A stretch of DNA of 64,000 bases from Thalia democratica (lineage: Eukaryota). Below, one piece after another: positions 1-57,000 of this stretch. Below the pieces are notes generated by a model. The model was not told where the DNA came from, did no database searches, and worked only from the letters and a program-made list of their open reading frames with translations. The translations under genes and the position numbers were made by a program. The stretch is taken from positions 23,808,001-23,872,000 of the forward strand of contig OZ241829.1 of assembly GCA_965202585.1 (NCBI GenBank), read 5' to 3'. Position 1 is the first letter of the stretch; every line of letters starts with the position of its first letter.

Positions 1-3000
1 AGCCAGGTTAGTGTAAACGTTGTTTGATGTTTTTTTTTAAATTAAGAAAGCACGAACCTTTTATTTTATTTATTTAAAAACGGGTATGGTTTGTGGTTCG
101 ATAAACAAATTTAAAATTGTGTTATAAAATAGATTTATTTTGATATTTAAAATGTGCTCGTAGTTTGTTCGCTAATTACTTATTACCACTTAAAATTGAT
201 AATACAATGCAATTTTCAGTTTGATGTGATGGCAAATTTCATCGAAGAAACTTCAACTATTGGTGACGTCATAGTTATGGTAGTCAGAGGGGTTTCAAAA
301 CTTTATACTGCAAGTGACGATTCCGAAATCAAAACAACACTAAGAAAGATCGGACTCGCTTCATTTGCAGGATGTATTGATGAATCTTATGCAGGTTTCA
401 CATGTTCTATAATACCAATTTTATCGATATAAATATGTGTTCTTCCTTACAGTTATCATTTGAATTAGTTGGGGTTTTGATTACTTTAATATTTTCCCTT
501 TAAGCGATTAAAATTTAAATTACAATGATTGTAAATTATTTATTTAGTTAAATAATATTTTTCCATGATAACCGCTTGAAATATACAAATTATTCGATTA
601 TTGTGTTTATACCAGACATATTAAAAGAACTTGCTCACATACTTCTTCAAGTTTTAAATGTGTGTACAATTGATTGTATCAAACAGTTTAACCATACATC
701 AGTCATGGTTTTTATTTTTTAAGTTTTTTAAAAGATATTGTTTTTTATTTCATTAAACTATTAATTATGTTACTGGTTGTAGAGAGCTTACTGAAAAGTC
801 ACAGATGTGCTTTTAAAATTTAAAATATAACTGATCTATAGTTAATTGATTTAATTTAAAACGAGATGTTTGTTTTCAATATTTTTTTTCAACAGCTGAC
901 AGCACTTCTTGGGCAGTTTTAACTGGCAGGTTTCCAGAGCACGCTTCCGTTCCAAGCTGGGCCGAATGCAAAACGAGCACAGACGATTCGGTTGTGATTG
1001 ACAAGACGTTCAATTTCGATTGTTAGTTTTTTTGTTATCAATTTTTGCTTAACAGACCAAGCGCTCGTTTCGAACTAGCACTTGCAATTTCGTATTTGAA
1101 AAAGAAAGCAAGTATCATTGTTATTGATTGAAATCATTGTCAAATTTTGTCAAAGCTTCTGTAACATTAACTTTGTTTTTTTAACACGTTTTCTACCCGA
1201 ATTTGTAGTTTAAATATTTTTTGCGTTTTTCCTAACAGCTTGTAGCAAACCTTCGTCAGAACTGAAGAACGGAGCTTATACTAATTTAGAAACGGATGAA
1301 ATATACAATTACGGCGAAAGTTTGAACTTCACTTGCAACAAAAATTTAAATCCAGTCCCCTCAAATAACCAAATTGTTTGCACTTTGATGGGATGGGAAC
1401 ACGAAGCTGGCTGTTTTGAAAGTTTATTAAAATATTTTGTAGTTAAATAGTGTAATAGTGTACTTTAAAAGCTATACCAAGTTATGTTAACAGTTTAATA
1501 TTTTTTAAAAAATTTTTTTTTTACTTTCTGTCTTTAGTAGCTATTTAACTGATGTATAAGCAAAAAAGAAAAAAATTTGAGAATAATTATCAGTTGCATT
1601 GAGTTGTAATTAGGAATTTCCAAGAAGTTTAAAAAATTTTAAATGCTTAATAATTAAAACATAATTAGTAATCACACAAAGACCAAAACTGCCAAAATAA
1701 GTTCAGCCTATTTTGTATCGTTATAAATTTATTTGAACAAGAATCGCAGTTTGACAATCCGGTAAATGGTGAAACTTATTTACTGCATGAATTATAGAAT
1801 CTTTGACTTGAGAAGATTCATTTGCTAAATCTGATACACCACATATTTAATTACTTAATTATTGATAGAATTATAAGTTATATTATACTGATACATTATA
1901 AAGTAACAAAATTTATTTGAGTCACCAATTTTTGAAAATTATTTTGTCATAAAGCTTTCTGCTCGTATTTTTCAAAAATCAACTTTCTGCAATTCGTTTG
2001 TTATATTGAAATGTACATTTCCTGAAATTTAAAATTTTAAGAAATTTTTCATGTTTTTTTGCATTTTGTTGTATCGGATTTTACGATTAAATTATCGAAA
2101 AAGTGTTAATTTTTGTATAAATATAAAATACACTTAGAAACTTAGAAATACAATATTTAAGAAGGTGTTTAGTTATTGAGCATTTAATTTCTCCATGAGA
2201 AACTTTCATAAGAAATTTGTAAGAATTAAGTATTAAATAAGGAAAATTATAATTTAATTGATTTATTGTATATAAAAATAAATAGTTGTGATAATATCCT
2301 TAATAAAAGCTTATAAAGAGAATGTTTATTAATTATAAACGGTGACTTCACTTATTTACGCATTTGACCCAAAGAATAAATTATGAATATTTTTTTAGTT
2401 TTTTTGTAACTTCAACATCAGTGCCAAAAATTGACCTTTACTTATAGACCCTTGCCAACATTTAAATTAAAGTAAAGTATTTTGTATAAACAGTTTCTTT
2501 ATCAATCCAGATCACTAAATATATTTTAAATACTTCGCTTAACTTTGAGCGTTCAAATTAAAAAATGTTGGAAAACTTTACTGGAATTTGTTTTTGATAT
2601 GTTTTTTTGTGTTGTCAAAAATAACTGCATAAACGTTCTTCATTTTTTACTGAATTAATTTCTATAAGAATAGTTTTAACAGATATTTACCTAACAGTTA
2701 AATATATCTGAAATGATCACTTAGCTGTAGTCTTGAATTAATCTTTTTCCAAACTTTAAAATTATTATTTTTGTTTAGTATTATATTTATTTTCAAATGA
2801 TATTATATCAACCTAAAAATTTAATAGTAACGATTTTTTATTAGTTTTGATAAGTGAAACGGACTAGTTACTTTATTACTTTATGTACAAAATAAAGATG
2901 TTTCCTATAACTTAAAAGAAATCAAAACGGTTATGAATTTCTCAATTTAAAAAAAATAAAGTTATGTTATAAAGATTATAAATCTTAATCGAATTAATGA

Positions 3001-6000
3001 TAAGTTTGCATTCGTGATGTGTGACTAGAGTGATTTTTTTTTTAGTAAATATTTTTAGGCTCATACCATAGACACGCAATTTACCACAAATAGCTAAAGT
3101 CTTAATGTTTGATTTCAGCAAACAAATTTTGCAAAACAGCTAAATAAAATGTGAACGTCATTGAGTAGTATATCACAGTTATTGAATATGTGGGTTTGCC
3201 ACAAATCTGTCTTTATTTGATAGCACAGAAATAAATAAACATGTTTTCTTTCACTTTAAATAAAATCTAAAAAAGTTATATGTAGAAAAATGTTGCTAAA
3301 TTCATTGACCCGAACAAAATTATATTTTATTTTTTAGAAACTCTTTTAGTACCCTCATGTGTGTATTAATTACCCGATATATATTACACTTAACTTGATG
3401 CCAAGGTTTGGACTCGATTTTAAAAAGATAGTTTTCTTTTTTTTAATTTTCTGTTTGTTGCCGATTTTCAAATTAATAGATTATCATTTAAATTAATAAA
3501 GGAAGACGTATATTATTATAGTTTCCTTAACTAATTGACTAACTTATACAGATCTAGAGCGTATAATTCATTCATTACAGATTGTCCTGACGTTCCATCA
3601 TTTAATAACACACAATTATCACTGACCGACCATGCTCCTTATCATCGCGTAGCAAATTTCATGTGCGAAGTTGGTTTTTCGCTCTTTTTAGATGACGGGA
3701 GCAGCGCAGATTCGTTCCAACTTACTTGTAGCAAGAACGCAACATGGGTTGGTGTAGAAGGAAAATGTAGAAAAGGTGATGTAACATTTTTTTCTATTAA
3801 TCATGCTCTGTAGTATGTTGTGTAGAGTTAGTACTTATTACAACTGTTTAATTCTACCAGGCAATGCTTTTAAATTGTGCGTTCCTTTAAACTTTACTAG
3901 CGATATAACAAATTGTATTAAGTTAAGAGTATTTCGTCAAGTTTGCAAACAGGTAAATTAGTTTGAAAAAGCTTCGGTTTTTGTGCTGAATGCTTAGTTT
4001 TGAATGTTAATTTAAATTTATCAATTAATTCGTTGAAAATTTTATTATTTTTTGTAAAACAACAGTAAAAACATTATAAATTTTTTGTCGTTTTTATAAA
4101 AATCAAAGTAAAATATCTATGCAATTTGCTTGATTTTAAAAACTTTTATAAACTTTAAAATATCCTGTTTTTGTTTTTAAAAGTCATATGACCAAAGTTA
4201 AAAGTAAAGTTATTTTGAAAAGTCATTTTCACAAATAAAAGTTTTTCTTTAGATTATTTTGAAACTAACAAATAGTTAACTTGCTTTGAAGAAGTATATT
4301 CTATAAAATTAAAAGCCCTGCTTATTCCCTTACTTAATCTACTTGATCCAAAATCAGTATACAACTGTTTATAAAACACACTTTAATAGTTATTTTATAT
4401 GCATTTTTCGCAACAAACTAAAAGGATGTTGCTTGTATCAATTTAAGCTTTTAACTTTTTACGAAACGCGAGAAATCTGAATGAACATTTATAAGTGTTG
4501 TTTCTGAAAAGTCACTTTACCATACACTGTTATATTGCAGACTGCCCGGCTGCAATACCTGATGATAAGCTCGAGATTTACAACATTGAAATGGTAACGA
4601 AAACGGAAGCGAGTTACGACGAGGCACTGCAAGTTGAGTACGTGTGCAAAAGTAATTACGACAAGCTGTATTTGGGTGACTTTGTTTATAAGTGTCAGGA
4701 AGATGGTACGTGGAACAATAAAAATGTACTCCAGTGTCTTAACAGTCAGTTGCTTTTTCTTCTTTTTTTAGTTTTCAGCGTCTGCGCGGTTACTACTCCT
4801 CTAAGGATAAAATTTAGTTTTCAAGTTTTGATATTTTGTTCGCAATATAAAAGTTTTTTAGGTCTGTGATTTGATTGCCTTTTAATTGTAGTCAATTATT
4901 AAAATTATACCATTTTTAATAAAAGTACTCAACTCATAAATTTTTGTTTTGTGCTTTAACCAAATAGGTTTGCTTTCGAGATAGTTTAATATAGTTACAA
5001 ACTTATTCCTAAGTTATGAATAAAACACACTTTGAATGAATGCAATTTACTTTATTTTCAATAATAATTCTTAGTTCTGAAGAAAGAAACTATTAAATCA
5101 CGACACAAATAAAATCTATAAAAAGTATCAACAATCGTAAAGTTACATAAATACTAACATCAACTCCGCGATGTAGACGTTTTCTTGATTCTCGATAAAT
5201 TGAAGTAAAACGTTAAACTTAATCGTAACTAGATCATACCGCGGAATAACTTTGCAACTGACTTTAACGCGTATTTGAAAGACAAACGCCGATATATACG
5301 CGTCGGAATGAAATTAACTCCTTGAAATAATAAAAATGTTTGTTTTTTTATAAAAATATGTTTGTTTTTTTAATACTAGAAGCACGTCACAAATATCTGC
5401 ACAAAACACTCCACAACATTCGCTTTAAAATACGAAAATGAGATGTTAATATCATTACATTGTTTCTTTTTAAATTTTCAATTTTAACGTTTAAAGCCTG
5501 GTTTTAAATAATATAAATCTTTAAAATCCTACTTAACTTTAAACTTTTTTATAATTTTTAAAAAGGGGGGGGGGGGGTCAAAAAAAAAAAAAAAGTAAGA
5601 AAAAGAAACTGTATAACTTATTATCTCAAAAATTACATAATTTACAAAAATTAAGATAAGACACAACATAAGGACAAATTAAAAATGATAGTCATTTAGT
5701 TGGCTTCTGGCTTGTTGTCCTCAGGCTGCTTCTTTTACTGTGGTTTATTTAGCAGGAACGAACTCTTTTAATTCGCTTGTTCTTCTCCAAATTCAAAAAT
5801 TCATCGAATTCACTTGTTGACATAGAAAATATTCATCTTTTCATTGTCCATCATTGTAGTATCCATTTGAAAGAATTCATTCCAAAAAATACGCGGCTCA
5901 AAAAAAAAGTTCAGATATTCTTTCAAGAAAGTTTAGTAAAAACTACTATGTTATTATGCCAAAAGACAATAACGAAACTGTCAGAAACTTTCAAACCCAT

Positions 6001-9000
6001 TTTTTTATACAAAACAAAAATTAAGCATTTAAATATGCATTAAAAGAAAATTAATATTTTAAAACACATGAAACATTTTAATTTTGTTTTTAACTTAGAA
6101 AAACATATGTTCTTAATATTTAACTCGCAAACTTTAATAAACAAAACAGAAAACATTTTCTTTAAAGTATTTTACAAAACAATAAGTACTATTTTCATGC
6201 ACAAACTTTTATAGGATTCAAGTATAAAATATCTCAAAAAGCAACACGAGCAATTTCTAAGCATTATAGAAATTTTAAAGAGAAAAATTTAGCGAGTGCT
6301 TTTGTTCGATCATTAACAGTTAAAACTAAATGGGAGTTGAAAGTACTTTTAAATTCAAAATTTATAGGAAAAGTTTATCACGAGTCGAATTTTAAAGCTT
6401 TAAACTTGAACTTGATTATTTTACGAGCAAAAACTCTGGTAATTTAATTTTGTTTTAAATTTAGAGAAAAAAAGTAGTTACTAAAATTTTAATGCAAAAA
6501 ATAGGCGTATGAAACTTTTCTATATTATAATTGCTATTTGATAGCTTTTAATTAATAGTTTAATTACTAAACTGTAATTTATAATATAAAAAACTTCATA
6601 AATCATCATTAAAAGTAAAAAAGCTATAAACTTTACAATTCAGAAATTTTATCAGAAAAGAATACAAAATAAATACACGTAATAGTTTCTTTCATTTTAA
6701 CTTCTTAAAAAAATTACCTGAGTTTAGAAAATATTTAAATAGATTTTCATGTTAATAAAAAGTTACAACTTTTTACCTTTATTAAAGTCTGTTTCGTTAG
6801 TTTTGTGAAAATGTTTATATTTTATCTTCAAAATGCTTTAAGATAAATGTAAAAAGTTTTAGACCTGCTATTAGTAATTCTGACTCTTTTTTATTTTGTG
6901 TTATAATTTCTTTTTTGTCAAAGGAATTAAGTACTGCCAAATTGTTGTTCTCTTTAGCTAATATGTTGCTTGATACGCTAGTTTGTGATTTTGTTTTTGA
7001 AGAATTGTAATAGCCTGAGTCTTGTTTATAACTTTTAAGCTGCACTGTTGGCACTTGATATTTTGGCTTGCTATCATACTTTTTATTGTAACTGATATTT
7101 TTCTGCTGTTGTTTCTGATGTTTTTCTTTGATAAGTTTACCTTGTTTTGCTTTAAAAGCAAAAGCTTTCTTATAAGCTCTACTAGCTTTTATTTTCTGCT
7201 GTTGGAGGTTACGAGAATGATGGTTTGCGTTAAATATATTTTGTTGAAGTTTTTGATTGTAGTTTGAATTTTTATCTACAGCATACTTAGACCCTTGAAC
7301 TGTTTTACCATTAGGACCTGTCACGTTTGCGGCTTCTGACATGTTATTTTTACCTACAACAATATCAAACTGGACTTTTTCTCCTTGTGCAAGAGACCTT
7401 AAGAATTTGTTAGGGTTATTTTTGGCGATAGCTGTATAATGAACAAAAACATCGCTGTTCTGATCATCACGATGAATAAAACCGTAACCTTTGCGAACAT
7501 TAAACCATACTACTTGACCAGTTACTCTAATTGCTTTAGTGTTTTTGGTTACCTGAGCTTTTTCTTTGGTTGTTTGAAACTCTTTGCTTGTATTAGATGT
7601 TTTTGTAGGTAAGTGTTGATGACATGACAAACAGTGTGCTATGTTAACATTATTACTACTATTCCCATTGTATGATTTTCTTGGTTTAAAACTATCTCTA
7701 TCTTGGTTATGTTGACGATAATTGTAATTATGATTAATACCATTATCTCGGAAATGAAAATTTTGTTGATAATTAGGACGAACTCGCTTATGGTAATTTA
7801 TTTTAGACCTATGCTGACTTTGCTCATACTGCTGTAGTCTATTGTAATTAACTTGCTTAGGTACTAATGCGTTTTCTTTATAAGCATTCCATATGGCTTG
7901 TCCTTTTCTTTTAAAAAGTTCTAAGCTTTCATCAAAATGTTCCCTAATCTTATCTTTGATCGAAAAGGGCATTAAGTATGCAAGAAAAAACTTAATTCTG
8001 TCCTGTTCTCGACATTTGGCCCAACTTACGGCTGTAGCAAATATTTTATTAAAGTTTGTACACTCATTCCAAATTGGAATTTTATCTAAAATTTCAGCTA
8101 ACTGATTGTCCCTATTAATAAAAAAGTTTCTTAAAGAACTGTAATTTCTTTCACCTCGTTCTGTCATTTTATAATAGTCTGACAACTCTTCTCTCGGCCA
8201 AAACCCAGTTAGAAATTTATACTTTTCTGTATTACTAGAAATATTTTCATTTAACATTTCCTCCTTGAAAAAACTAATAATATCACGAGGGTTTCTTACA
8301 AAGTCTAACCTTTTAAACTTTTTACTTAGTCTTTGCGCCTTAAATGTGTCGCTAAAAATGTTTAAATTATTTTGATTACTTTTTTCGTAATCATCGTAAA
8401 AAGGTTCGCGTTTTTCTAGCATCGCACGTTCGTAATGTGGTGATCTAGACTGCTTTAATCTATTATTTAACTTTTTTATTTGCATTTGCAAAACTCTTAA
8501 CTCTTCTTCATTTGTTAGCTGCTTAACTTCGCTTGATTTTCTAAATTGTTGTTGAATGCTGTTTGACGGATAAAATTCAGCATTATCATTCATCATCTCT
8601 GCTTGATGAGAATTATTAAGATTGATATCGTCATTGTTGTTTGTGTGCATTTATTCTGTTTACTGCTTAAAGATTTGTAACCAGAAGATTCAAGGTTCTT
8701 AAAAGACACTGCGTGGTTTCCACTTTAACCAAATGGGTTATTTTAATGGTTTTTATGTTTTATGTCTTAACTACGTGGTCTCCAGTAACTTACTAACTGC
8801 TATACTTACGAGAAGTAAATAATATACTAACAGTATAAGTTACAAAACTATTTCCTAAGTTATGAATAAAACACACTTTGAATGAATGCAATTTACTTTA
8901 TTTTCAATAATAATTCTTAGTTCTGAAGAAAGAAACTATTAAATCACGACACAAATAAAATCTATAAAAAGTATCAACAATCGTAAAGTTACATAAATAC

Positions 9001-20527: not shown

Positions 20528-23374
20528 ATTTACAACATTATGAAAATAGTTATGGTTTAATTTAAAGCATGGTCTACATTAATTGAAGCTTTATCACTTT
20601 ATACCTTAAAATACATTAAATCGATTCGTCGAGTATAACTCGGTAACCGAAAGGTTTTTTTTAGACCTAGTCCTTAGACTAAACTTTTTGAGCGCTTTTT
20701 TTGCCGTTAAAACAAAAACTCTTATAAGCTTTGGAACTCTTTTTTATTTTATTTAAGTAATACCGTAAAAAGCTCAAAAACTTTAGTTGTGAATAAATCT
20801 ATTTATGTAAAGTAAAGTAAATAAACAATATTTACAAAATGAAGAAAATAAACACTTAGTTTTTTATATAAATTACTTACAAAAAAACTAATACACAAAA
20901 ACAAATAACTATAAAAAAATGAACCGAATTTTTAAAGCTTAAATGTTTATTTAATTCACTAATTATTCAATAAACAATCCTAATAGTTTTTTAATCAAAA
21001 ATTTAATTATTGTATAGAATTTTAATGTAATAATTATATATGTTTATACCTTTTCAGATTGGATGAACTTTGAAATTTATACAAAAAGTATGGAAAGCTT
21101 CAGATATTTCGTTTAATTTAAAAAAAAGTAGTTATAATAGTTTTATTATGGTTTTATAAAATAATGGTAACACACTAAACTCTTACAAACTGAATAACAT
21201 TTGAACAAACATTAATTATTTTTAGAAGCAAATTTTCTGTGCATTTTTCAAAACTGACTTGTTTCATACTAGTTTGGCTTGTCAGAAAGCAGCATACTGT
21301 ACTTACATGTAAATTTACTCTTTAACACAATATTTTGCAACTAAATTAGTTTTTATTTGTATATCAATATGTTATTTCGATACGATTTTACTTTATCATT
21401 AAATTAAGTCATAGCTTCAGTAAAGACTTTTTAAAATAATATTTGTCCGCGATTTGCTATTTCTAGTAAAAAAAGCTGGTTAATTAAAAAAGCTGCCAAC
21501 CCCTACAAATACCAGTGTTGTTTAATAAGACCACAAGAATATATCAGATGAACTATTAAGATTTAAAATTAATTTAATTTTACTTGCTAACAATATTGTG
21601 CAAGTTTTGTTTATGTCCTGGAAACTGCTGCTGGAAACAAAATAAAATAATTAGTCTTTGAAGTTTCAGTTGTTATGTAACTGCTACAGACATATTTAAC
21701 ATTTTATCTTTAGGGTGTAGCTCTCTTTTTGATGATTTTGAAAAAAATTTCACTTAAAACTTTTACCCCTTTAAATAATTTCCAAAAATGCCTTAGTTGA
21801 AAAGTACATACTTTACTGGTTGGCAAGTTACTCAAAAAAAATTCTCGAATTTATTTTAGAAGTTCAGAAGGTTTCATACATTTCTAACCGACATACTGGC
21901 AAAAAAAAACACTTATTGAAAAAAAAATACAACTTAATGGTCTACTGAGAAAAAAAAAATTAGTTTATTTTTAGAAGTTCAGAAACTTTCTAGCACCTGA
22001 ACTGGTAAAAAATGAAGTTTATAAATTTAACGCATTTAAAGAGACAAAAACTGACATTGTTTAAAAAATTAACAGAATAATAAAAGAGATTTTGCCTGAC
22101 GGGAGTGCAGGAGTCTGGAAAAACTAACATATGTAAAAAAAGACATGCAAGAAAAAAGCAAAATATTTGTATATGAATTTGAAAAAATTGCACAGTTTTT
22201 TGATTTAACAACTAATATATTTTTCTCTGTGTTTTACAAGTTAAAAGTAATATCCTAATTGAGTTAAAGAAAAGTAATGTGTAAGTTGTGTAAGTTGTGT
22301 AAGTTGGGTACAGCAAACTTGCTTCGCTAGGATCTGTATTAACAAACGACTAGCTTGTACTTTTGGTTATTTATTTGTATTAGATATATATACTGAGATT
22401 TTATTTAGTTATAAATTAAAAAAAAATATCTGACAGAAAATATTTTAAATCAACTTATTAACCTAAATTTAACTTCAAAAAAAAATCAATTTATCTTTAT
22501 ACGTTTTTCATATATAAGTCTGAATAAATAAACTAAAAGCTTATTTTGAAAGACAATATTGATCGCAGGAAGCTAAATCAAACTAAAATTTTTTAGACTA
22601 TAAAGAAACATCTTAATATTTAAAAAGTAGTATCACAAAAAAAATATTATCAAAAATAAAACACAAAAAATTCAATTAACATTCTATTTAATTCACCTAC
22701 CCAAATAAACTAGGGGTTTCTGCTCTTGTTGGTAAAACTTTTGCTCATCGGTGTTTTGCTCTCTTCTTCCATCTCATACATGCTGCGCACTTTCTTCGTG
22801 GCAATATTCGAGTTTGCCTGACACAAAAGCCTGGAAAGATCAAAGGCCAAGTCGATCTGTTTCAATTGAGTAAAGTTGATTTTTCAAAAACAGTCTTGTT
22901 TAATAATTAGTATGAACACAGAGGTTGTGACCATTGTAAACTCAAGTTTGATTAATTTAAAGCTATGAATTGCCATTCTTTCTAATAGAACTACTGTGAC
23001 ATACTTTCCTCTTTTTTTGTGATAGTCAAAAAATCGAAAACTAAAACTGACTTAAACTACTTTAAACTGAATCCTTTACATTTTTTCATCGCATTACACT
23101 TTTTGTTGTTTTTCGATTGAGTTTTAATGATTATTTTCGAATAGTAATTCTAAAATAAGTTTGCTTGATATAATAATTACTAAACTCACTACCAGTGGTA
23201 ACATTCCAACTTGAGCAACCCAACGGTTAAAACAGAATGTATTCATATTTGGTGTTAATTATATTTATCCGTTATTCGCCGCACCTTCACGATTCAAAAG
23301 ACCAAAACAACGATACGTACTCAGAATTCTTCGAATTCAACGGAATTAGAAGACTGAGCGACTTACAAGTGACG

Positions 23375-25357
23375 CACAGTGGGCTGAAAACGGGGATCAA
23401 GCGGCCATTGACATAAAACTGTCATAAAAAGCACTATAATACAATTTAAAGTTACACTTCGTGTTACAATAAGAATAATGTTTGTTTTTATTTAAAAATA
23501 GTTTAAAATTTTAATTTTCAATGAAACTTTAAAGAAAGAAACTTAGAAAAAAAGAAAATTATAATGGCTGCCTCAAGAGAGTCACATTTACTTCCATTTT
23601 AGTTTAAATATGAATGAATTTTCAATATCAAGCCGGGTGAAACTATACTCTAAATACAGTTTAATTTTAATTTAAGGCTGATCTTTGTATATCAAAGTTT
23701 GTGTTATTAATAACGTTACATTTGTACTAGTTTATCAATAGAAAAAAAACCGTAAACATTTTGAACAATAAAAAAATTTATTTGTTGCAAAATAGTGCAA
23801 AAAACAAAATAATTTAGCCTGTGATTTAAAAAAAGCACTTTAAATTTACTAGAAAATATAAGTCAAACAGTTAGTTCTTAAAACTTCTTTGAAGTTAAGC
23901 TTCTCAAATAAATAAAACATTCTATTCAGTAGCACAAAGCATATGTAACAACGTTTCCCATTCTGAACTACATGATGAAATTTTTTCATTTAGCTGCAAA
24001 CAACTTCGCGCAGTATGTCCGACTTCTTTACAATAAGAGCAATTCAGTCTGTCTAAAGTGTTGTTAACATCGTAGTCACTCTTGTCCCATAATCGAAATA
24101 AACAGTCTGTTAAATTTTCATACTGAGAAGTTTTCCTTGAAAAGTTCATTCTGTACAATCTTAGAAACTTGTTGTTAGCTTCCAATCCACTTTCGGTGTA
24201 ATTTAGCAAACCTCTACCGTTGTTTTGCTCAATTAAATCAGGACTATGTGCAAGAACAGTATGCGCAGTTGGTGTGAAGCGAATCCATTTAAACGACATG
24301 ACCAGCATCATTGTTTTTTGACATAAAACTGTGTATTTCTCTACATTAATCTTTTTGTTAGAATTTATCGGCCATAAAATAATGGAAACATACAAAATAA
24401 TTTTGTTAATGTTTTCTTTTAAACTAACATCAGAAATATGCTTCGTCAGCAGAGTCCTATTATTGGTGTTTAGCAAAGTTTTGACTACGTTACCTGTTGT
24501 AGAAGTTCCACCATGGCCTGTGGGATACTGTTTTTCAAGAAAACTTTTAATTTGCTAAAATAGTAAAAAAAAAACTATTTCAATAACTAAAACATATACT
24601 AAGCTACCATGTTTTGACCAATACTAACTGTTCTCATCATTCTTGGAGCTTAAATGATCTGTGAACAAAAGTAAGTGAATCTATACACATTAAGAACCTT
24701 CTAGAACATACAGAATAGTCTTTTTTGTCAAAGTGAAAAACCAGGGATAGGATATTATATCAATTTTTTTAACAGAAATATCGCTTGTCAAAACCTAAAA
24801 AAATAGTTATATTCCACATGATAGATTTGTCGGTAAATTTGTATATCGATTCCTTGTGATTTTTACTAAATTATAAAAAAAAAAATTATGTTGGTTCTAC
24901 GGTAGTGAATTGAGAAAATTAACCCTGAAGAATATCCAAAATTGCCAGAAAATCATCAATGAACTTTCGGTGAGAATAGAAGGTTTTTTAAATGAGAAAT
25001 AATATACTTTTATATTTAAATATTCAAAGAATTTTGACTTTTTTCAATTAACATTAAACCAAATAAATGAAAATACTTAAAAAAAGTATTTGTATAAAAG
25101 CTTATAAGGTGTTTTTTAACAGTAGATGTAGACCTTAACTTTGACAAAAATTTAAGCATTTTTCGAGGCTTTTTTAAACTTAAAAAAAGCAAACTTTGGC
25201 TACATTTAAGCTTACATAACTTTTAGTATACTTTAAGCAGAACAGAAACAAACCCAGTTTTTAAAAGACGAATCCCCGCTCTAAACAATTAAATAAAAAT
25301 CTTGCTTTAACTGTTTAGTCGCTAAAATAGTCAATGGCCACTTGCCAGCCCACTGTG
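23375..25357 (-). mobile_element. Transib/RAG1-like DNA transposon, internally deleted (1983 bp)
   Basis: TIR CACAGTGGGCTG...CAGCCCACTGTG, 5-bp TSD TGACG (23370-23374, 25358-25362), transposase C-terminal fragment inside. Confidence 0.9.
23922..24554 (-). pseudogene. C-terminal part of a Transib/RAG1-family DDE transposase
   Basis: Open frame GHGGTSTTGNVVKTLL...TPTAHTVLAHSPDLIE...TESGLEANNKFLRLYR..FSRKTSQ..L.D.L.RLW; Hx4H zinc ligands and E-x3-E-x2-NK catalytic helix as in Transib/RAG1; Cx2Cx3GHx4C tail. The upstream two catalytic Asp are not found. Confidence 0.85.
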
Positions 25358-25699
25358 TGACGTACTAGTAAAGCGGAACCAGAAGTCCACTAGCTCAAAT
25401 AGTTGATCCTAGTACAGCTATTTTGTTTATAGTTAGTTTTGAAAATTTCTTACTTTGAGAAGACATTGAAACCACTTAAAAATTCCTTGGAGCCGCTGCG
25501 CACTCGGTGCAAACCGAAGATATAAGTTTAAACGAAGAATGCCCCGAAGTGAATCTCGCTCTTGTTGTTGATGCCGAACCTGTTACAGAGGCGGTTTCAA
25601 GACGCAAGTAGCTCGGAGAGCATCAATATAAATCTTGAAAGTAAGCTTTTGAAAAGTTTTATTTTTACAGCCTCGAATTTATAAGTTAACTATTATATT

Positions 25700-26600
25700 T
25701 ATAAAGTTTGAATAGCAAGAACACAACGAAAATCTCGTACAGCTGTTTGCCTAATATGAGAAACATCATCAACTCACACAACAAAAAGATTTTAGAGACT
25801 GAAAACCAAACGAAAAAAACTTGCAACTGCAGAAACAAGATGAATTGCCCATGTACTGGTAAATGTTTATTAAAAGGTGTATATAAAGCAAAAGTTAGAG
25901 ATAAAGAATACATTAGTTCTACGAGAAATTCTTTCAAAACAAGGTGGCAACAACACAAGCACAGCATCCTCAAGAAATTGCAAACAACTGCCCTGGCTAG
26001 ATTTACCACATCAATATTGTTTATTAAACGACAAAAAAAGCGATCAAAATATTTGGTCCTAGGACTTGGTGCACGAAAAAACCTTTCGGTTATCGATTCG
26101 TAGACCACGGATACCTTTTAACGCCTAGCCCAGGACTGATGACAATGAATTATTCGAAATTGAATGGCAAATGCTATTTAAAATCAACTGATCAGTGCCC
26201 AGAAAGACAGATAAGTGCTCTATCTTCAACCTAGGAAGAATGGCCATTGCTGAAGCGGACAGAGATAAAGCACTTAATGTAAGAACATAACTAACTTCGA
26301 CATGCCCCAATTTTAGATCTGGTTATTTTTATTTTTTATTTTATTTATTGTTGTAATTTTTGTTTGTTATACCATCCTAAGTTTTATTTTTTCAATTTCT
26401 TTTTACTGTCAGTTTTTGCTTAGTTTTCATTTTTAAATTAATTAGTTAATTTCCCTTGTACTTACTTAAGCACGTATGACTAATTAGTTACTTTCTCATT
26501 ACCTTATATTACTATATTTGTGTGCTTCATGTTATTATATTGTTACTTAAAAAACTCTGAAGATAATTTTATGAGAAACAGTGTTAGTTAAAGTAACAAT
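25700..26600 (+). mobile_element. 5'-truncated, degraded Penelope-like element (GIY-YIG endonuclease end)
   Basis: KISYSCLPNMRNIINSHNKKIL...CNCRNKMNCPCTGKCL...YISSTRNSFKTRWQQH; continues 26131-26290 (FEIEWQML...IAEADRDKALNVR) after a 26009-26125 repeat insertion. Confidence 0.8.
26553..26589 (+). ncRNA. Degenerate minimal hammerhead at the PLE 3' end
   Basis: AACU CUGAAGA UAAU uuu AUGA GAAA C agu G UU AGUU; 4-bp stem I, stem II has one mismatch. Confidence 0.5.
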
Positions 26601-26769: not shown

Positions 26770-27227
26770 GATCATTTCTAACCCGCTATCATTTCTAACC
26801 CATTCACTTCTAACCCGATCACTTCTAACCCGATCACTTCTAACCCGATCATTTCTAACCCGATCACTTCTAACCCGATGACTTCTAACCCGATCATTTC
26901 TAACCCAATCATTTCTAACCCAATCACTTCTAACTCGATCACTCTAACCCGATCACTTCTAACCCGATCACTTCTAACCCGATCACTTCTAACCCGATTT
27001 AACCCATTCATTTCTAACCCGATCATTTCTAACCCGATCACTTCTAACCCGATCATTTCTAACAAGATCATTTCTAACCCGATCACTTCTAACCCGATCA
27101 TTTCTAACCCGATTTAACCCATTCATTTCTAACCCGATCATTTCTAACCCAATCATTTCTAACCCATTCATTTCTAACCCGATCACTTCCAACCCGATCA
27201 TTTCTGACCCGATCGTTTCCAACCCAT
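26770..27227 (+). repeat. 15-bp tandem array (left arm)
   Basis: About 30 units of ccgatca(c/t)ttctaac; source of the spurious MIGLE/SNPII ORFs. Confidence 0.95.
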
Positions 27228-29625
27228 TCTACTTGTTTATTTTACTTTAATCTGGATTTCATGCAAAAAGAAACTATTCCTAACTAAGTTATTAATTTTT
27301 TTTTTAGTTTGTTTATAACATTATGATTTTCATGTGTTACGTAGAGTACATTGTTAGTTTAAATTTTAATTTTAGTATTAACTTAACATAAGTTTAATTT
27401 ATTTTTATTACCTCGTTTTTTCAATCCTACACATAATTTCAATTTTTTTTATTTTTTTTTTCTTTCAATCTTTTTTAACGGACGTTTTTCGTTAATCATA
27501 TACAATTGACTAAATAGTTAACTTTAAAATATTTTAAATTATTCTTTGTAGGATTATAAAGTAAACAGTTATAATTATGTTTAAGTTGGATCTTATAGTA
27601 ATTCACGTCACTATAATAGTTTTAACATAAGCAAATTTTAAAAAGTAAACATTTACCATTGTAATATTTAGATACAAAAACCTTTATTACGGTCTAAAAA
27701 CTACATTGTAAGTCTGTTGTAAATGTTGTATTATTGCTGACTAATGTATTTACGTTTTATAGTAGGCTAGTTTTAAGTTTCATTTTAATAACTTTTACAA
27801 ATTTTATACAACTTGCATAGGCCTATTAAGATAGTGGAATTTAAACAAACACTAGGAGAAATTAAATACTTTTGTTATATTAAGTAGAAAAGCATGATTT
27901 TTAGGTATAACCTAGATAATAGTTATGTCATATAACAAACCGCAAAAGTATATTACGTCGATTGACCGTCTTGATTTCACATCATTAATAAATTTCTACT
28001 TAGTCCTAGAGCAAATAAAAGTAACTTATAACTACACAGACATGTCTATTTATATAACAATTCCGAGGTTAATCAAATCTCGCCTAGGTAATCTTCTTTA
28101 AAAACTTCACGTAATCTATATAATATACAAACTATTTCAATTACGACTTAAATTAGTACTTTAGTTGACAAATAATTCTTTAAAATTTACTTTAGTTTGA
28201 ACAGTTGCAATAACGTAAGTAAAAACGAAATAAGTACTGAAAAACATTTTGAAATAGAATAAAAAATCAATTATTGTTAATTTAAGTATAACTAACAGCA
28301 GAAGTTTATAAAAATTCTTTCAAGTTCTTTTTTCCTTTAGTCAACTAAAACTAAAGACGATTATTACACGCAACATATTTACTTTTTATTCATTACAGTA
28401 AAGCCAGCTTGAAGACTATTGACTTTATTCTCGGTGTCTTTTGCACCTCTAAATTTCTATAAATGTAATGAGTTTTTTCTTTAGTAGAAATTTAAATCTA
28501 TAGCAGAGTTTCACAATACCAACTAATTTTATTATTTTATTATAAGTGTTTAAGTTATGTAAGTTAATCAAATAACTTAAACTTATATTTCAAATTTAAT
28601 TATCACTAAATAATCTTAGGATTTTGTGGTTTTGGAAACCTGTGAAACAATAACTTTTAAAAGATATCAAGAAATCTTTTTTAAGAAGTTTTTACTTTTA
28701 ATTGTGAGAAATTCTTTTTGCAATTTTAAATTTTGAAAACTTTTAAATTTTCATGGTAAAATTAAATTTATTTTGCTCTATATACAATATTTTTTGAAAA
28801 AAAAGTTAAATAATAAGTTTTCGAAACTCAACTTTTATAGTTAAGTTTATTGTATAATATATCTTATAATCTTTAAATATAATTTACCATTGGCTAAAAG
28901 AAAGAAAATTAAATTTTAGTTCTAGTAAATGACAGGATCTAGATATTAAAAAAAAACGTCTACCTCTAGTTTTGACTTATTAAACAATGTACACTTTCGT
29001 TTTAAGAACATAGAATTAGATAATGGTAATTTAAATAAAACCACCATACTAATTAAGATAAATAAATTTTATTAATTGTATTATTTCAAGTTTCATATAT
29101 ACTAATATAAATTTTCTTAAAAAGTTGTAATTCATATAAATTTGCCCTAAATTCAAATTCAACTTGCCAATCTGGTCTCCATACTTGAAAAATATATATT
29201 AACCATATAGAAAATCTTCAAAGAAAAAGTACGGTATGTATTTAACGGCTGCAATACTCATTATATATCTCACATTGACAACTATCAAAACTTAATATTT
29301 AATCTTTAGAATTCAAAAGACTTATACTTTTCCTAATGCTTTTTAAAACTAATTAAATACAATTAATTAATAATCCATTTTTGAACCTTTTTAGAATAAT
29401 TAATTACCACAAAAAAAAATCAAAAAATTCATGCAGTCATGGTTATCTTTCAGTTTAAATGTTGAATTAGCTTTCAAAGAAAACTAATCTTTGTAAAAAA
29501 ATTAAACAACTTTGATTTAAGTTTACTTGATTAAGATTAGATACTTTATATTAGAAACTATAAGTAACTTCACAAGTTTTAAACTTATAGACCATTGATT
29601 AAATATGTAGAATTCGGTTCATTAT

Positions 29626-31862: not shown

Positions 31863-32772
31863 TACCGAAACTTGTGGTCTGATGATCGAATTGGCATGAT
31901 CAATCCTTTTGTTAATTTCAATAATGTTTATTTTAATTGTATCGATTATGCTTTGGCATAGCGAAAAAAATAATTGATGAAAAACAATGAAATACCAAAC
32001 GGTTGCACAAATGTACATAACCTAACTCTAAAAGTCAGGATGTGTATATCCAGTTGATGTTTGAACAAGATAAATTTTGTTCATGAACTTTGGAGTTTGT
32101 TTAAATTCTGACATTCTAGTATGTTCTAAATAAATTTTATAAAAGTAACCATGAATCTTATTTTAATGAAGAAGTGCGTGATTCAGACTGTTTTGCTGAT
32201 TGCTGCACTAAATCATTGAAATATTTTACTAAATCGTCTAAATATGTGTTGCTGAGTTTTTAAGAGAAGGTTTTTTTTGTTGAAAAGAAATCGGAACTTA
32301 ATTCTAAATTGAAATATTGTGCAGCTGTGTTTGGTTTTATTGGAACTAACTGATCGATGAAAGAATTGATGTCAAACTTGCTTATTATGAAGTTAAAACC
32401 AAATTTGTTAAAAACCTTCTCCTTCAAATCATAAATAAGTCAATTAGTATTATAATAAATTGTTGATTTCTTTTGCTGTTAATCTATAAATGTTTGATAA
32501 AACTGAAGTTTTTAATTTTAAGCTAAATAAACTTTCGTCTCTTTGTTAAGTGTCATTCAGTTTAAGTGGCCCAGATTTTGGTGCCTGGGTCTAGCGTAGG
32601 ATAACAAACTTCCAATAGCAAAAATAATGTTTTAACAAAAGCTATCTGAACATTAAGTCTTATTTTAAACAAAACAAACTAATTTCATTAAAAAAACAAC
32701 TTTATTGAGATTAGTTTGTTTCCAAAACAAACCCTTATTTTAAAACAATAATAAACAAACATACTAATACAG

Positions 32773-33115
32773 ATCGGGTTAATAGTTGTCGGGTTAGTTC
32801 GGGTTAAAAATGATCGGGTTAGAAGTGATCTTGTTAGAAATGATCTTGTTATAAATGATCGGGTTAGAAGTGATTGGGTTAGAAATGATCGGGTTAGAAA
32901 TGATTGGGTTATAAATGATCGGGTTAGAAGTGATCGGGTTAGAAGTGATCGGGTTAGAAGTAATCGAGTTAGAAGTGATCGGGTTAGAAGTGATCGGGTT
33001 AAAAGTGGTCGGGTTAGAAATGATTGGGCTAGAAATGATCTGGTTAGAAATTATTTGGTTAGAAGTGATCGGTTAGAAATGATCGGGTTAGATATGATAG
33101 CAAGTTAGAAATGGT
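32773..33115 (-). repeat. 15-bp tandem array (right arm)
   Basis: gatcgggttagaa(g/a)t units, reverse complement of the left array. Confidence 0.95.
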
Positions 33116-54000: not shown

Positions 54001-57000
54001 TTTATAGTAACTACGAAATATGTTTCCTACAAGTTGTTTTAATTTTATCATTAAATACTTTACAAAAGTTTTAAAACATTTGCTCAAAAATTGAAGGAGG
54101 AGATAGCTTTTTAATAAAATAGTCTATTTTTGCCCTTTTAGTTTGCGCTCCCATAAAGAACCTATTGAACGCTTTAACTTTGATGGTTCTACAACGTTTT
54201 AAAGTAAAAAAACTAAGAAATAAACGCATAAGGTGAGTTATTCTGATTTATATGTTTAATTTAGTTTATACATAGATAAATATTCAACTGTTTTTTCAAA
54301 GCCTTACCCTTGGCAAACAAGCAAGGCAATTATACTTTATAGACTCGTTTACAGATATTTTTTATATTTATTAATTATTATTGTTTAATTTTTATTCAAA
54401 GAATAACACAAAATAAAAGTTCTCAAATACTGTACCAATTTAACGGATACAAATTTTAAATAAAGATTATAAGAAAAAAAAGAGAAAGCCTCTATCACCT
54501 AAACCTTTAATAAAGCTTTATAGTTAATCAGTATACTGTAAAAATATCTATGAAATTAACTTACTATGCTTCTAACTTGCATTTGTTAAGATTATATTTT
54601 TTAGGTATTCTACAAGGGTCATAGGATATAGAATTAACACATAATACTTTTTAATAATAAATTTATTTATTTATACAAAGGCAACGACGTTTCACCCCTA
54701 AGGGATCTTCAGGCCTGCAAATAACATAAAAATAAGACGATGGATAACTAGAAAATATATATAACAATGTAAGATATTACAATCAAACTAAAATTAAGTT
54801 AAAAATCATTAAATCAGTATAGTATTAGTACTAAATAATTAAACTAACATAAGTAAAAAACAAAAATAAGAATAAGAATAATATATTTAAAACAGTAGTA
54901 TTTTTACTTACAACTATAGATATGTTTTATACAGATTTAGATTTAGCTTATAACAACCCAAAACAAAATGGCATTTAACAAATAAGAGTACAAGCAAAAA
55001 CAAAAACAAGTAATAAAAGTTTTGAATACGCTAAGTTTTAAAATAAAGTTTCCTAAAGTGCGGGCAGGTGTAAAAGAGCTCTTGTTTTTTGTTTAAATTT
55101 CGTTTCTTGTTAGCAAGTGCTATCTCAATTTTTTCCAGGTTGCAAATTTGCAGTATTTACCTATATTTTTTACTTCTCTAATCTAATGCATAATGTTCCA
55201 CCTCATTTCGTAGCAAGTGCTATTGTTTTTTTAATCTCCAAATGTACTTGGAAAGTTCTGTTCCTTTGTTATTTTCATTCCTATTATCACTAATGTGTGC
55301 ATACTATCTCTTTTTGAATTGGCCTCCTGTGGATCCTATATATTTCTTGGTTTCGTTCTGGCTAGTGATGGTCGCCTTAAATACAACATTCTCCTGCAAG
55401 CATTTGCCACTTAAGGGGCAGAAGTCTTTGTCGCGGCAGTTGCACGCCTTATTCTTTTGGTCTTTCTTACGGTTCAATTTGCTTAGTATCTTCTTGTTGT
55501 GGCCATTTATCAACTATTTAACATTTTCCATACAACAGTACGATACTTTGCAGTTGCTTCTGTTAAAATCTTTTTCATGCTCTCTGTTTTGAAGTGTTTG
55601 TCAATTAGGTACAATAAATTTTTCCCAATGTTAGTTTTAACTGATTGGCAGTATGGGGGATTGAAGAACATAATTTTTCTTGTTCGTTTCCGTTTCTTTT
55701 TGTCAACAGGGTTGGCTTTGTTTTCATAATTAAGTCTGTGTTTGAAGATAGACTGGCGCAGAGCAAGTTGATAGCTATGCTTTGCATCATCCAAGGTTCG
55801 TTGGTCTGTAGACAGTCTATTTAATCTTTTCTCTATCATTTTAGGTAGGTTTTTCTTGATTATCGTCGGGTGGTTTGAGCTATTGTTCAAGTATCTGATT
55901 GAGGAGTTTTCTTTTCTGAAAATTTCATCTTGCATTATTATATATATTTTCTAGTTATCCATCGTCTTATTTTTTTGCAGGCCTTAAGATCCCATAGGGG
56001 TGAAACGTCGTTGCCTTTGTGTAAATAAATAAATTTATTATTAACTTTGTCTCCAAGATTAATTTTGTTGAGACCTATTGTATTAAGGAATACTCCTTGC
56101 ATATACATAATACTTTTTAATAAACTAATTGTATAAAAGATGTACATAAAACATTAATTTAAAATTTAAATCTTGTTCTTATTTGAAAATTATTTTTATT
56201 ATAATCTGCAATATACTCTTTGCACAATATTTAAAAGTTTGTAATGACAGTGCAAAATTCTTCCTTGCATTGTCATTGTGTTAGAGATTTAGATACGCTT
56301 CATTGCACGAGCCAATGAGAATCATCTGATGTAATGTTTTAAACTAAATACTGATGCAACGGGACGTCAAGGCGTGATGGGCAGTTTCATGTAAGCAGCT
56401 AGTTTAGGTTTGGTGTGCAGCTGGAAGCAACAACATCTTGAACTGATTTGTGAATGTATATATCTAGTATTGTTTTAAAGTTAATATTTCAACTGGTGTT
56501 TCATTGTTTGAACATTTAAGCCAGGTTTATATTTTAATAGTTTGTTAAACCTTTTAAAGTTTATTGTTTACTAAAGTTTTATTTAATTTTTAGTTTATTG
56601 TTTTAAGTCTTTTGATAGATTTAAATAGCTTCCAGTTTTTAAAGTGTTATAATAGTAATTTATAATTTTGTATATGCTTTTATTTCTTGTTGTGTTTTAT
56701 ATAAAAGGTTCATCACTCAAAACTGTCTGTCTGATTTATATAAAGTAGCCTAGAATAGCATTAAGTATATATTGTTATTATGTCCAACTTAGATAGTATT
56801 AATGATAAGTTGCCTGCAGCGGGTTCTGAACATAAGCCTGTTAGAAGGTCACCCCGCTTGCAGGAAAAGTATGAACAAAAAGGTCAGGTTGACTATCTGC
56901 CCACAGTAAGTCAACCTGACCCAACTGAGGCTTTAGATGTTGGGCCACCAACATCGGTAGCCCACAAGTTAACAAATTACTAGTTTTATAAATTTTAACC

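Follow-up and report, generated by a model that had tools for sequence, protein, structure and literature searches.

Here we show that positions 23375-25357 of a 64-kb stretch of DNA (64,000 nucleotides of contig OZ241829.1, filed under Thalia democratica and referred to below as the window) are occupied by an internally deleted, non-autonomous and dead copy of a transposon, the end product of a series of deletions, whose sequence places it in the Transib superfamily. The ends of this element are 28 and 38 bp long and are built from the same two blocks, the inner of which is offset by exactly 10 nt between the ends. We consider it probable that the window holds a deleted copy from a high-copy Transib family with bipartite ends, in which an offset of one helical turn is conserved, and has been selected, across a clade of transposons of marine animals.

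The element spans 1,983 bp, has a G+C content of 28.7% (vs. 27.9% for the whole window), and lies between two copies of a target-site duplication (TSD) of 5 bp, TGACG, at 23370-23374 and 25358-25362 (without strand). Directly inside these, CACAGTG, the consensus heptamer of the recombination signal sequence (RSS), is read at 23375-23381 and its reverse complement at 25351-25357. An initial annotation, made from the letters of the window, had proposed both features, and direct reading confirmed them together with all of its coordinates. Because the coding frame of the element is on the minus strand, the element 5' end is the short end (25357) and the 3' end is the long end (23375). The perfect terminal inverted repeat (TIR), reading inward at both ends, is 12 nt (CACAGTGGGCTG) and comprises the RSS-consensus heptamer followed by GGCTN; further in stands a 15-nt inner block (CAAGYGGCCATTGAC). 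Each of these two blocks is found in the window at two places, in both cases in the ends of the element, where shuffled sequences predict 0.02 and 0.04 occurrences, respectively.

The long 3' TIR (38 nt, 23375-23412, minus strand) consists of the terminal block (23375-23386, CACAGTGGGCTG), a G-rich insert of 11 nt (23387-23397, AAAACGGGGAT), and the inner block (23398-23412, CAAGCGGCCATTGAC). The short 5' TIR (28 nt, 25330-25357, minus strand, so that the plus strand gives the reverse complement) consists of the inner block (25330-25344), a single spacer nucleotide (G, 25345), and the terminal block (25346-25357). The initial annotation had described the last nine bases of the inner block as a second recognition unit at unequal distances from the heptamer, and this nonamer (GCCATTGAC) does lie 22 nt from the heptamer at the 3' end (23404-23412) and 12 nt from it at the 5' end (25330-25338, reverse complement), with the 10-nt offset exactly as described. 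The resulting end lengths of 28 and 38 bp compare with 28 and 39 for RSS12 and RSS23. The division into heptamer, spacer of 12 or 22 nt, and nonamer is nevertheless one framing, given that the units conserved across families are the 12-nt terminal block and the 15-nt inner block. The inner block has no A-tract, and an A-rich nonamer of the ACAAAAACC type is absent.

Other copies of the same family were found by exact-protein look-ups in Tara Oceans assemblies and one JGI sample. Two of them (L008 and L010, the latter with one substitution) have the same long 3' end beside different flanks, and a JGI contig (L009) contains a whole copy plus flanks, with an identical short 5' end and long 3' end. 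A fourth contig (L020) closes in the same long TIR after 1.18 kb of 3' sequence that is 94% identical to the window. In a further contig (L007), no more than 543 bp match the element and the part upstream is unrelated; this contig was left out as rearranged or chimeric. The initial annotation had named symmetric ends in other copies as the observation that would reduce the offset to a private indel of this copy; instead, these four copies, and the four diverged families described below, have the offset in the same polarity. In contigs of two organism-labelled sequencing runs, the summed word depth over both TIRs is ~60,000-100,000, and no insertion or deletion reaching at least 5% within either TIR is among the entries listed. 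We found no support for the alternative that the window copy alone acquired the offset, as a private indel, and regard it as hardly credible.

The same contigs locate the ends of the element independently of the TSD. Sequences of other copies diverge from the window exactly at 23375 (31 and 25 contigs in the two runs) and at 25357/25358 (loose ends of 42 contigs), continuing into unrelated DNA. Similarity to the window also halts just past 23412 in 17 contigs, and several single-contig joints, some of them present in both runs, stop between 25317 and 25338, at or near 25330. These break positions fit functional ends of 38 and 28 bp, with few contigs behind the point. Summed word depth rises from ~60-210 in the flanks to 17,000-109,000 inside the element, a quantity which is not a copy number but which suggests that the family has hundreds of copies. 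The family is also abundant in marine plankton metagenomes.

Two further observations concern these data sets. Contigs of both organism-labelled runs (A and B) bridge both junctions of this particular insertion (23212-23401 and 25331-25500) with 3-4 differences; the insertion is therefore common to both samples, which may come from the same species or from close relatives. In addition, two marine metatranscriptome runs (X13 and X20) yielded contigs over much of 23375-25329. Transcription of the element is therefore possible, although DNA carry-over would also give such contigs.

The only homologous reading frame of the element is a transposase remnant at 23922-24554 (minus strand), consisting of the last ~210 codons and the stop codon. 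It includes a ZnH2-type H..H motif (TAHTVLAHS), the third catalytic Glu (ESGLEANNK), and a zinc knuckle of the form Cx2Cx3GHx4C (CSYCKEVGHTARSC). Both catalytic Asp regions are absent, and the window copy therefore cannot encode an active enzyme. The remnant has 927 homologues in a library of 1.8 billion proteins, and its best sequence matches among solved structures are the HzTransib transposase (7e-8) followed by the amphioxus RAG1L protein BbRAG1L (3e-5). The Pfam RAG1 match is weak (E 9e-4, under the curated cut-off, covering profile positions 555-616 of 653), and the identity call consequently rests on HMMER, PDB and fold searches. When twelve full-length transposases (670-790 aa) were aligned to the window, only their last ~190 residues matched, and a search with these relatives found no further transposase exons upstream of 24554 or elsewhere in the 64 kb. 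The part downstream of the transposase stop codon (23413-23921, minus strand), in which no open reading frame (ORF) with homologues was found, is 92-94% identical to L008, L009, L010 and L020; the 5' non-coding leader (24555-25329, minus strand), likewise without a homologous ORF, is 92% identical to L009.

The initial annotation had bounded the element correctly but listed it as a transposon without marking it as a deletion derivative, and comparison with the other copies shows what has been lost. A deletion junction lies at 24540-24554 (minus strand): contigs have loose ends at 24540, and element-upstream of this position other copies have either ~415 bp or the whole transposase gene. In L010 these ~415 bp (198-611), which are absent from the window copy, encode transposase residues 2-63 fused to residues 482 to the end. 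L020 (1-1977) carries a near-full-length transposase gene of the same family, whose alignment with the transposase of a relative covers residues 55-528 and the C-terminal part of the latter; the gene has one in-frame stop at L020:628. The copies thus form a deletion series leading from a near-full gene (L020), via the fusion of the N-terminal 2-63 to 482-end (L010), to the window type, which is without the start as well. As only the C-terminal third of the transposase remains, the window copy cannot move alone.

Complete elements were reached via proteins 50-60% identical to the remnant, and they fall into four diverged families, one found in the copepod Caligus rogercresseyi and the other three in assemblies of marine metagenomes. 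The Caligus element (L011; chromosome CP045893.1, 3289-7285) has the TSD CAGTA and a transposase called as 531 + 184 aa. The second family is represented by two copies in one ENA assembly, of which L012 (3647-7063, TSD TAGTA) is degenerate and L013 (4654-8259, TSD TTCAA) has a transposase in two called pieces (305 + 238 aa) that is not intact. The third comprises five loci in marine metagenomes (L014-L018), with L014 containing an element at 411-5326 with an imperfect TSD (3 of 5) and a transposase of 533 + 183 aa. The fourth, in a 4.8-Mb assembly contig (L021, 2962-6914, TSD CCCTA), has an intact transposase of 711 aa. The contigs (L022 and L023) of the closest full-length relative, the 715-aa protein P0192, are too short to reach the TIRs. 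In the Caligus (5800-6001) and L014 (3799-4293) families, the transposase gene is interrupted and the gene calls break right after TGHGG(S/T)(S/T)TTGNIAKV, which suggests an intron; the same point is uninterrupted in the window family and in several metagenome proteins of 704-715 aa. A pattern scan of JGI metagenome contigs for both TIR blocks also returned six loci, which we rejected as G+C-rich chance matches.

The initial annotation had spoken of a Transib/RAG-like transposon, and the Transib half of this label is the one that stands. The 5-bp TSD (perfect as TGACG in the window and as CAGTA, TAGTA, TTCAA and CCCTA in the relatives), the RSS-heptamer-like CAC...GTG termini (CACAGTG at both ends), and a RAG1-core-like DDE transposase are all present, the last with its C-terminal third in the window and the rest in L020 and the relatives; the catalytic residues D265, D365 and E630 are nearly invariant in the transposase alignment. 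By these sequence features the element belongs to the Transib superfamily. It might instead be the remnant of a RAG-like (RAGL) transposon that once had both a RAG1-like and a RAG2-like gene, as its Cx2Cx3GHx4C tail is the one that defines the CTT* of invertebrate RAG1L proteins (PMC7204232), and the transposase fold matches RAG1 as well as it does HzTransib. The convergent RAG1L-RAG2L gene pair that marks RAGL transposons is, however, absent from the relatives. The initial annotation had suggested a search for a RAG2-like kelch/PHD gene in full-length copies, and none was found in the complete relatives L011, L013, L014 and L021 (3.6-4.9 kb), between whose TIRs the transposase gene is the only one with a domain and the only one called. 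Nor do these complete elements leave space for such a gene. Full-length relatives without a RAG2-like gene make the element a Transib and not a RAG-like transposon. HzTransib is moreover the best solved relative by sequence, and Subgroup I Transibs have been published with the same tail (PMC9435367). We therefore regard a RAGL origin as very improbable.

In a maximum-likelihood tree of 26 transposases, which holds no curated references and has a Mnemiopsis leidyi protein as its sole named neighbour, the window family (P0208) falls within a clade of eight with 100/100 support, as sister to P0192. The Mnemiopsis protein belongs to the next group out, the sister group of the clade (93/89 support). 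The zinc-knuckle tail Cx2Cx3GHx4C is present in all eight members of the clade, one of them with a G-to-D variant; the Mnemiopsis protein that comes closest to the clade in the tree does not have it. Tao et al. 2022 (PMC9435367) characterize Subgroup I Transibs by asymmetric TIRs, a C-terminal tail (CTT) of the CTT1 type, and the alpha11-alpha12 (RAG2-binding) region of the zinc-binding domain. The clade shows two of these three named features, namely the asymmetric TIRs (28 vs. 38 nt in five families) and the CCGHC C-terminal tail (CTT1 with Cx2Cx3GHx4C, CSYCKEVGHTARSC).

A regular-expression scan of all fetched DNA from the five families (the window family and its four diverged relatives) recovered a spacer of 1 nt in 7/7 short ends and of 11 nt in 13/13 long ends, with the short end upstream of the transposase gene in every case. 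In each family, the two ends of an element cease to resemble each other ~15 nt into the inner block, giving ends of 28 and 38 bp throughout. The heptamer is the consensus CACAGTG, with CACAATG at the 3' end of one relative. The inner block is CAAGCRGMCAT-like across families; the resemblance to the GCCAT start of the amphioxus ProtoRAG inner block, which the initial annotation had cited, is limited to the window family, its relatives having GACAT. The nonamer GCCATTGAC is accordingly particular to this family, and "12/22" is one of the ways in which a 28/38 architecture can be framed. One apparent rule-breaker, the 5' TIR of L012 (14-nt offset, 4 nt missing), was rejected as such, since its sister copy L013 is standard and the change is hence a private loss in a degenerate copy.

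These data bear on the possibility that the offset is functionless, a single ancestral indel of the clade which has been tolerated and inherited. Five families within one clade do require no more than one origin. However, although their transposases diverge down to 50-60% identity and nothing outside the TIRs can be aligned, the spacers (1 and 11) are invariant in 20 ends; the sequence of the insert is itself maintained, and the sole deviating end is the degenerate one discussed above. We judge this alternative to be quite improbable.

A second alternative accepts that the asymmetry is conserved but takes it to be no device for synapsis geometry of the 12/23 kind. The 11-nt G-rich insert would then be a separate cis element, either a site for the transposase or a host factor that marks the "right" end, or a signal for the 3' end of a transcript. 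Many transposons have non-identical ends without any spacer rule, as in piggyBac, where internal repeats lie 3 bp and 31 bp from the terminal repeats. In favour of such an element, the insert sequence is kept across the families (AAAACGGGGAT, AAAACGGGGGT, AGACAGGGGGT, AGACAAGGGGT and AAATGGGGTGT; ARAYRGGGGNT-like), unlike the spacers of RSSs, and the 5' ends have an end-specific motif of their own after the inner block (ATTTT-GCAAC-TTTC-like). Against it, the difference is exactly 10 bp in five families, which keeps the inner block on the same face of the helix, and a structure model of a relative shows a nonamer-binding-domain (NBD)-like domain on a low-confidence linker, the device by which RAG1 accommodates length asymmetry. 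We regard this alternative as unlikely, though far from negligible.

The 5'-end-specific motif stands just inside the 28-nt TIR and is shared by four families. It reads ATTTT(T)AGCRAC in the window (25290-25329), L012 (3675-3700) and L013 (4682-4707), with a counterpart, AATTTTGGCAACTTT, in L014 (439-465) and L021 (2990-3015). Nothing comparable was found at the 3' ends. The motif may serve as an additional binding site or as a promoter element.

The structure model was built for P0192 (715 aa, 60% identical to the window remnant) from an alignment of 25 homologues, with a mean pLDDT of 84.9. Residues 162-715 superpose on HzTransib with Z 31.3 (466 residues, root-mean-square deviation 2.6) and on RAG1 459-1008 with Z 31.2 (486 residues). 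Against RAG1 chains that include the NBD, residues 91-161 match RAG1 391-458, and against BbRAG1L the match reaches residue 698, beyond the CCGHC motif at 677-690. The stretch between the NBD-like helices and the core (156-162) has a pLDDT <50, as expected of a flexible linker. A GRPR/K motif was not found in the clade transposases, which have KRP...RQQRRR where RAG1 has GGRPR.

On our preferred reading, that of a Transib family with a selected one-turn offset, the window copy must owe its insertion, and with it the 5-bp duplication, to transposase that full-length copies provided in trans. A transposase dimer would cut at the heptamers by the nick-hairpin chemistry of RAG1 and Transib, and its zinc-knuckle tail would clamp the heptamer-adjacent sequence (positions 8-17), as in amphioxus RAG1L. 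The NBD-like three-helix domain, on its flexible linker, would read the inner block, and the NBD-like dimer would pivot or tilt so as to reach that block at the 3' end, where it lies another turn away, in the manner of the RAG1 NBD on 12/23 RSS pairs. The identity, anatomy and conservation of the element and the predicted fold of a relative are observations; which domain reads which block is inferred from work on RAG, ProtoRAG and HzTransib (PMC10462144, PMC7204232, PMC8289069). As the initial annotation had suggested, the enzyme might require one short and one long end, which we hold to be possible while leaning against it. The more specific proposal, that a Transib transposase enforces a 12/23-like rule (one 28-bp plus one 38-bp end) alone, in the absence of RAG2 and by means of a hinged NBD-like domain, is put forward as speculative and would seem rather doubtful at present.

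Several points weigh against this reading and the mechanism drawn from it. The functional claims made for the clade enzyme come from sequence and a structure model, and the model is of a relative with 60% identity, in place of the enzyme of the host itself. With an inner block that is not rich in A/T, and with KRP...RQQRRR standing for GGRPR in the NBD-like domain, a RAG-like nonamer reading is only an analogy. The 11-nt insert is conserved, which suggests that it may itself be bound and is no neutral spacer. Ends within a family are shared by descent, leaving only the five families as independent observations. Finally, RAG2, which is absent from these elements, has been suggested to help impose the 12/23 rule (PMC4840297).

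Asymmetric Transib ends as such have been described. Kapitonov & Jurka 2005 (PMC1131882) described Transib families in which the 5' terminus is like RSS12 and the 3' terminus like RSS23 and stated that the 12/23 rule is derivable from them, and Yakovenko et al. 2021 (PMC8355894) built a hypothesis on these RSS12/RSS23-like termini. The one-turn asymmetry that the initial annotation mentioned for some insect Transibs is indeed reported in the former study, for Transib5 of Drosophila melanogaster and for Transib2_AG and TransibN1-N3_AG of Anopheles gambiae. These share with the window family a 5-bp TSD, CAC-heptamer ends, a bipartite TIR of ~38 bp, and a short 5' form (RSS12-like) and long 3' form (RSS23-like) that are about one helical turn apart. 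They differ in their insect hosts, an A-rich nonamer-like second block, and CACAATG (here CAAGCRGMCAT-like and CACAGTG), the TIRs having been compared by description only. Subgroup I Transibs (Mnemiopsis, Pleurobrachia, Hydra Transib-9 and a bacterium; PMC9435367) are alike in that all members have asymmetric TIRs, and in having a CTT1 zinc knuckle of the RAG1L type and no RAG2-like gene. While the sister group of our clade contains a Mnemiopsis leidyi protein, that nearest protein is without the tail motif and the published reference set lies outside our tree; the hosts here are a copepod and marine organisms.

Martin et al. 2023 (PMC10462144) state that Transibs have been seen with each of three features, namely asymmetric TIRs, a CCGHC tail and an NBD with GRPR/K, and find that the two ends of PflRAGL-A, from the acorn worm Ptychodera flava, differ in length by 10 bp. 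The latter resembles the present family in its heptamer, conserved adjacent block (TR2), asymmetric spacer, second block, CCGHC tail and NBD as well, but it has RAG2L, an A/T-rich nonamer-like block, and the GRPR/K NBD motif, none of which is found here. Amphioxus ProtoRAG (PMC8289069) likewise combines bipartite asymmetric TIRs with a CTT* tail, and its inner block TR5 (GCCATCTTG, vs. GCCATTGAC here) starts with GCCAT, as the initial annotation had stated. The resemblance covers 5 nt and does not extend to the sister families, which have GACAT; ProtoRAG spacers are 27 and 31 bp, a difference of 4 bp and not a helical turn, and RAG2L is needed. A preference for 5'/3' pairs was shown experimentally for ProtoRAG (PMC8289069).

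HzTransib of Helicoverpa zea (PDB 6PQN and related entries) is the best match of the transposase in both sequence and structure, and the same cut-and-paste chemistry would be expected by analogy. Unlike the asymmetric ends described here, HzTransib is flanked by symmetric TIRs (PMC8289069). Subgroup II Transibs, in which we place HzeTransib from the order in a figure legend, carry another tail, CTT2 (PMC9435367). The solved HzTransib chain starts at the equivalent of model residue 162, leaving the NBD-like domain without a counterpart in those structures.

The remainder of the window contains lectin/sushi exons and transposon ORFs only. Two ORFs of ~130-145 aa (25705-26100, plus strand; 55513-55950, minus strand) have cysteine-rich or basic motifs (CNCRNKMNCPCTGKC, FFNPPYCQSVKTNIGK) and no Pfam match, and resemble pieces of another mobile element. 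At 26781-27247 and 32691-33105, a short unit that is open in several frames on both strands (giving, for example, SNPIT and LTRSL repeats in translation) forms long tandem arrays, probably minisatellites. A 611-aa ORF at 6818-8650 (minus strand) encodes a cold-shock domain (Pfam CSD, 6.7e-22, residues 377-445).

The principle of asymmetric ends has already been published, and the gain here is one of material and taxonomic range, not of concept. What is new is the clade, with its marine zooplankton hosts, exact RSS heptamer, invariant 28/38 geometry, and conserved G-rich insert; the host is possibly new too. The literature searched contained no report of a tunicate Transib and yielded no paper linking the terminal sequence to Transib, and RAG-like genes have, according to the literature, not been found in tunicates. 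The clade extends the range of the asymmetric Transib type to marine zooplankton, with a copepod as one host and a pelagic tunicate as another, provided that the latter is correctly assigned. How the 12/23 rule originated is under debate; one position has RAG2 contribute to it (PMC4840297), and another has it inherited from transposons with asymmetric ends (PMC1131882, PMC8355894, PMC10462144). For this question the clade offers test material with sharp 28/38-bp ends, an exact RSS heptamer, and a 10-bp offset invariant over five families, together with several apparently intact transposases of 704-715 aa that have no RAG2, a predicted NBD-like domain, and a RAG1L-type tail. If an enzyme without RAG2 does enforce the pairing of short with long ends, the rule that V(D)J recombination follows on length asymmetry would be older than the capture of RAG2; and if the host is a tunicate, an element of this kind would be flourishing in the chordates nearest to the vertebrates, a lineage in which no RAG-like genes have been found.

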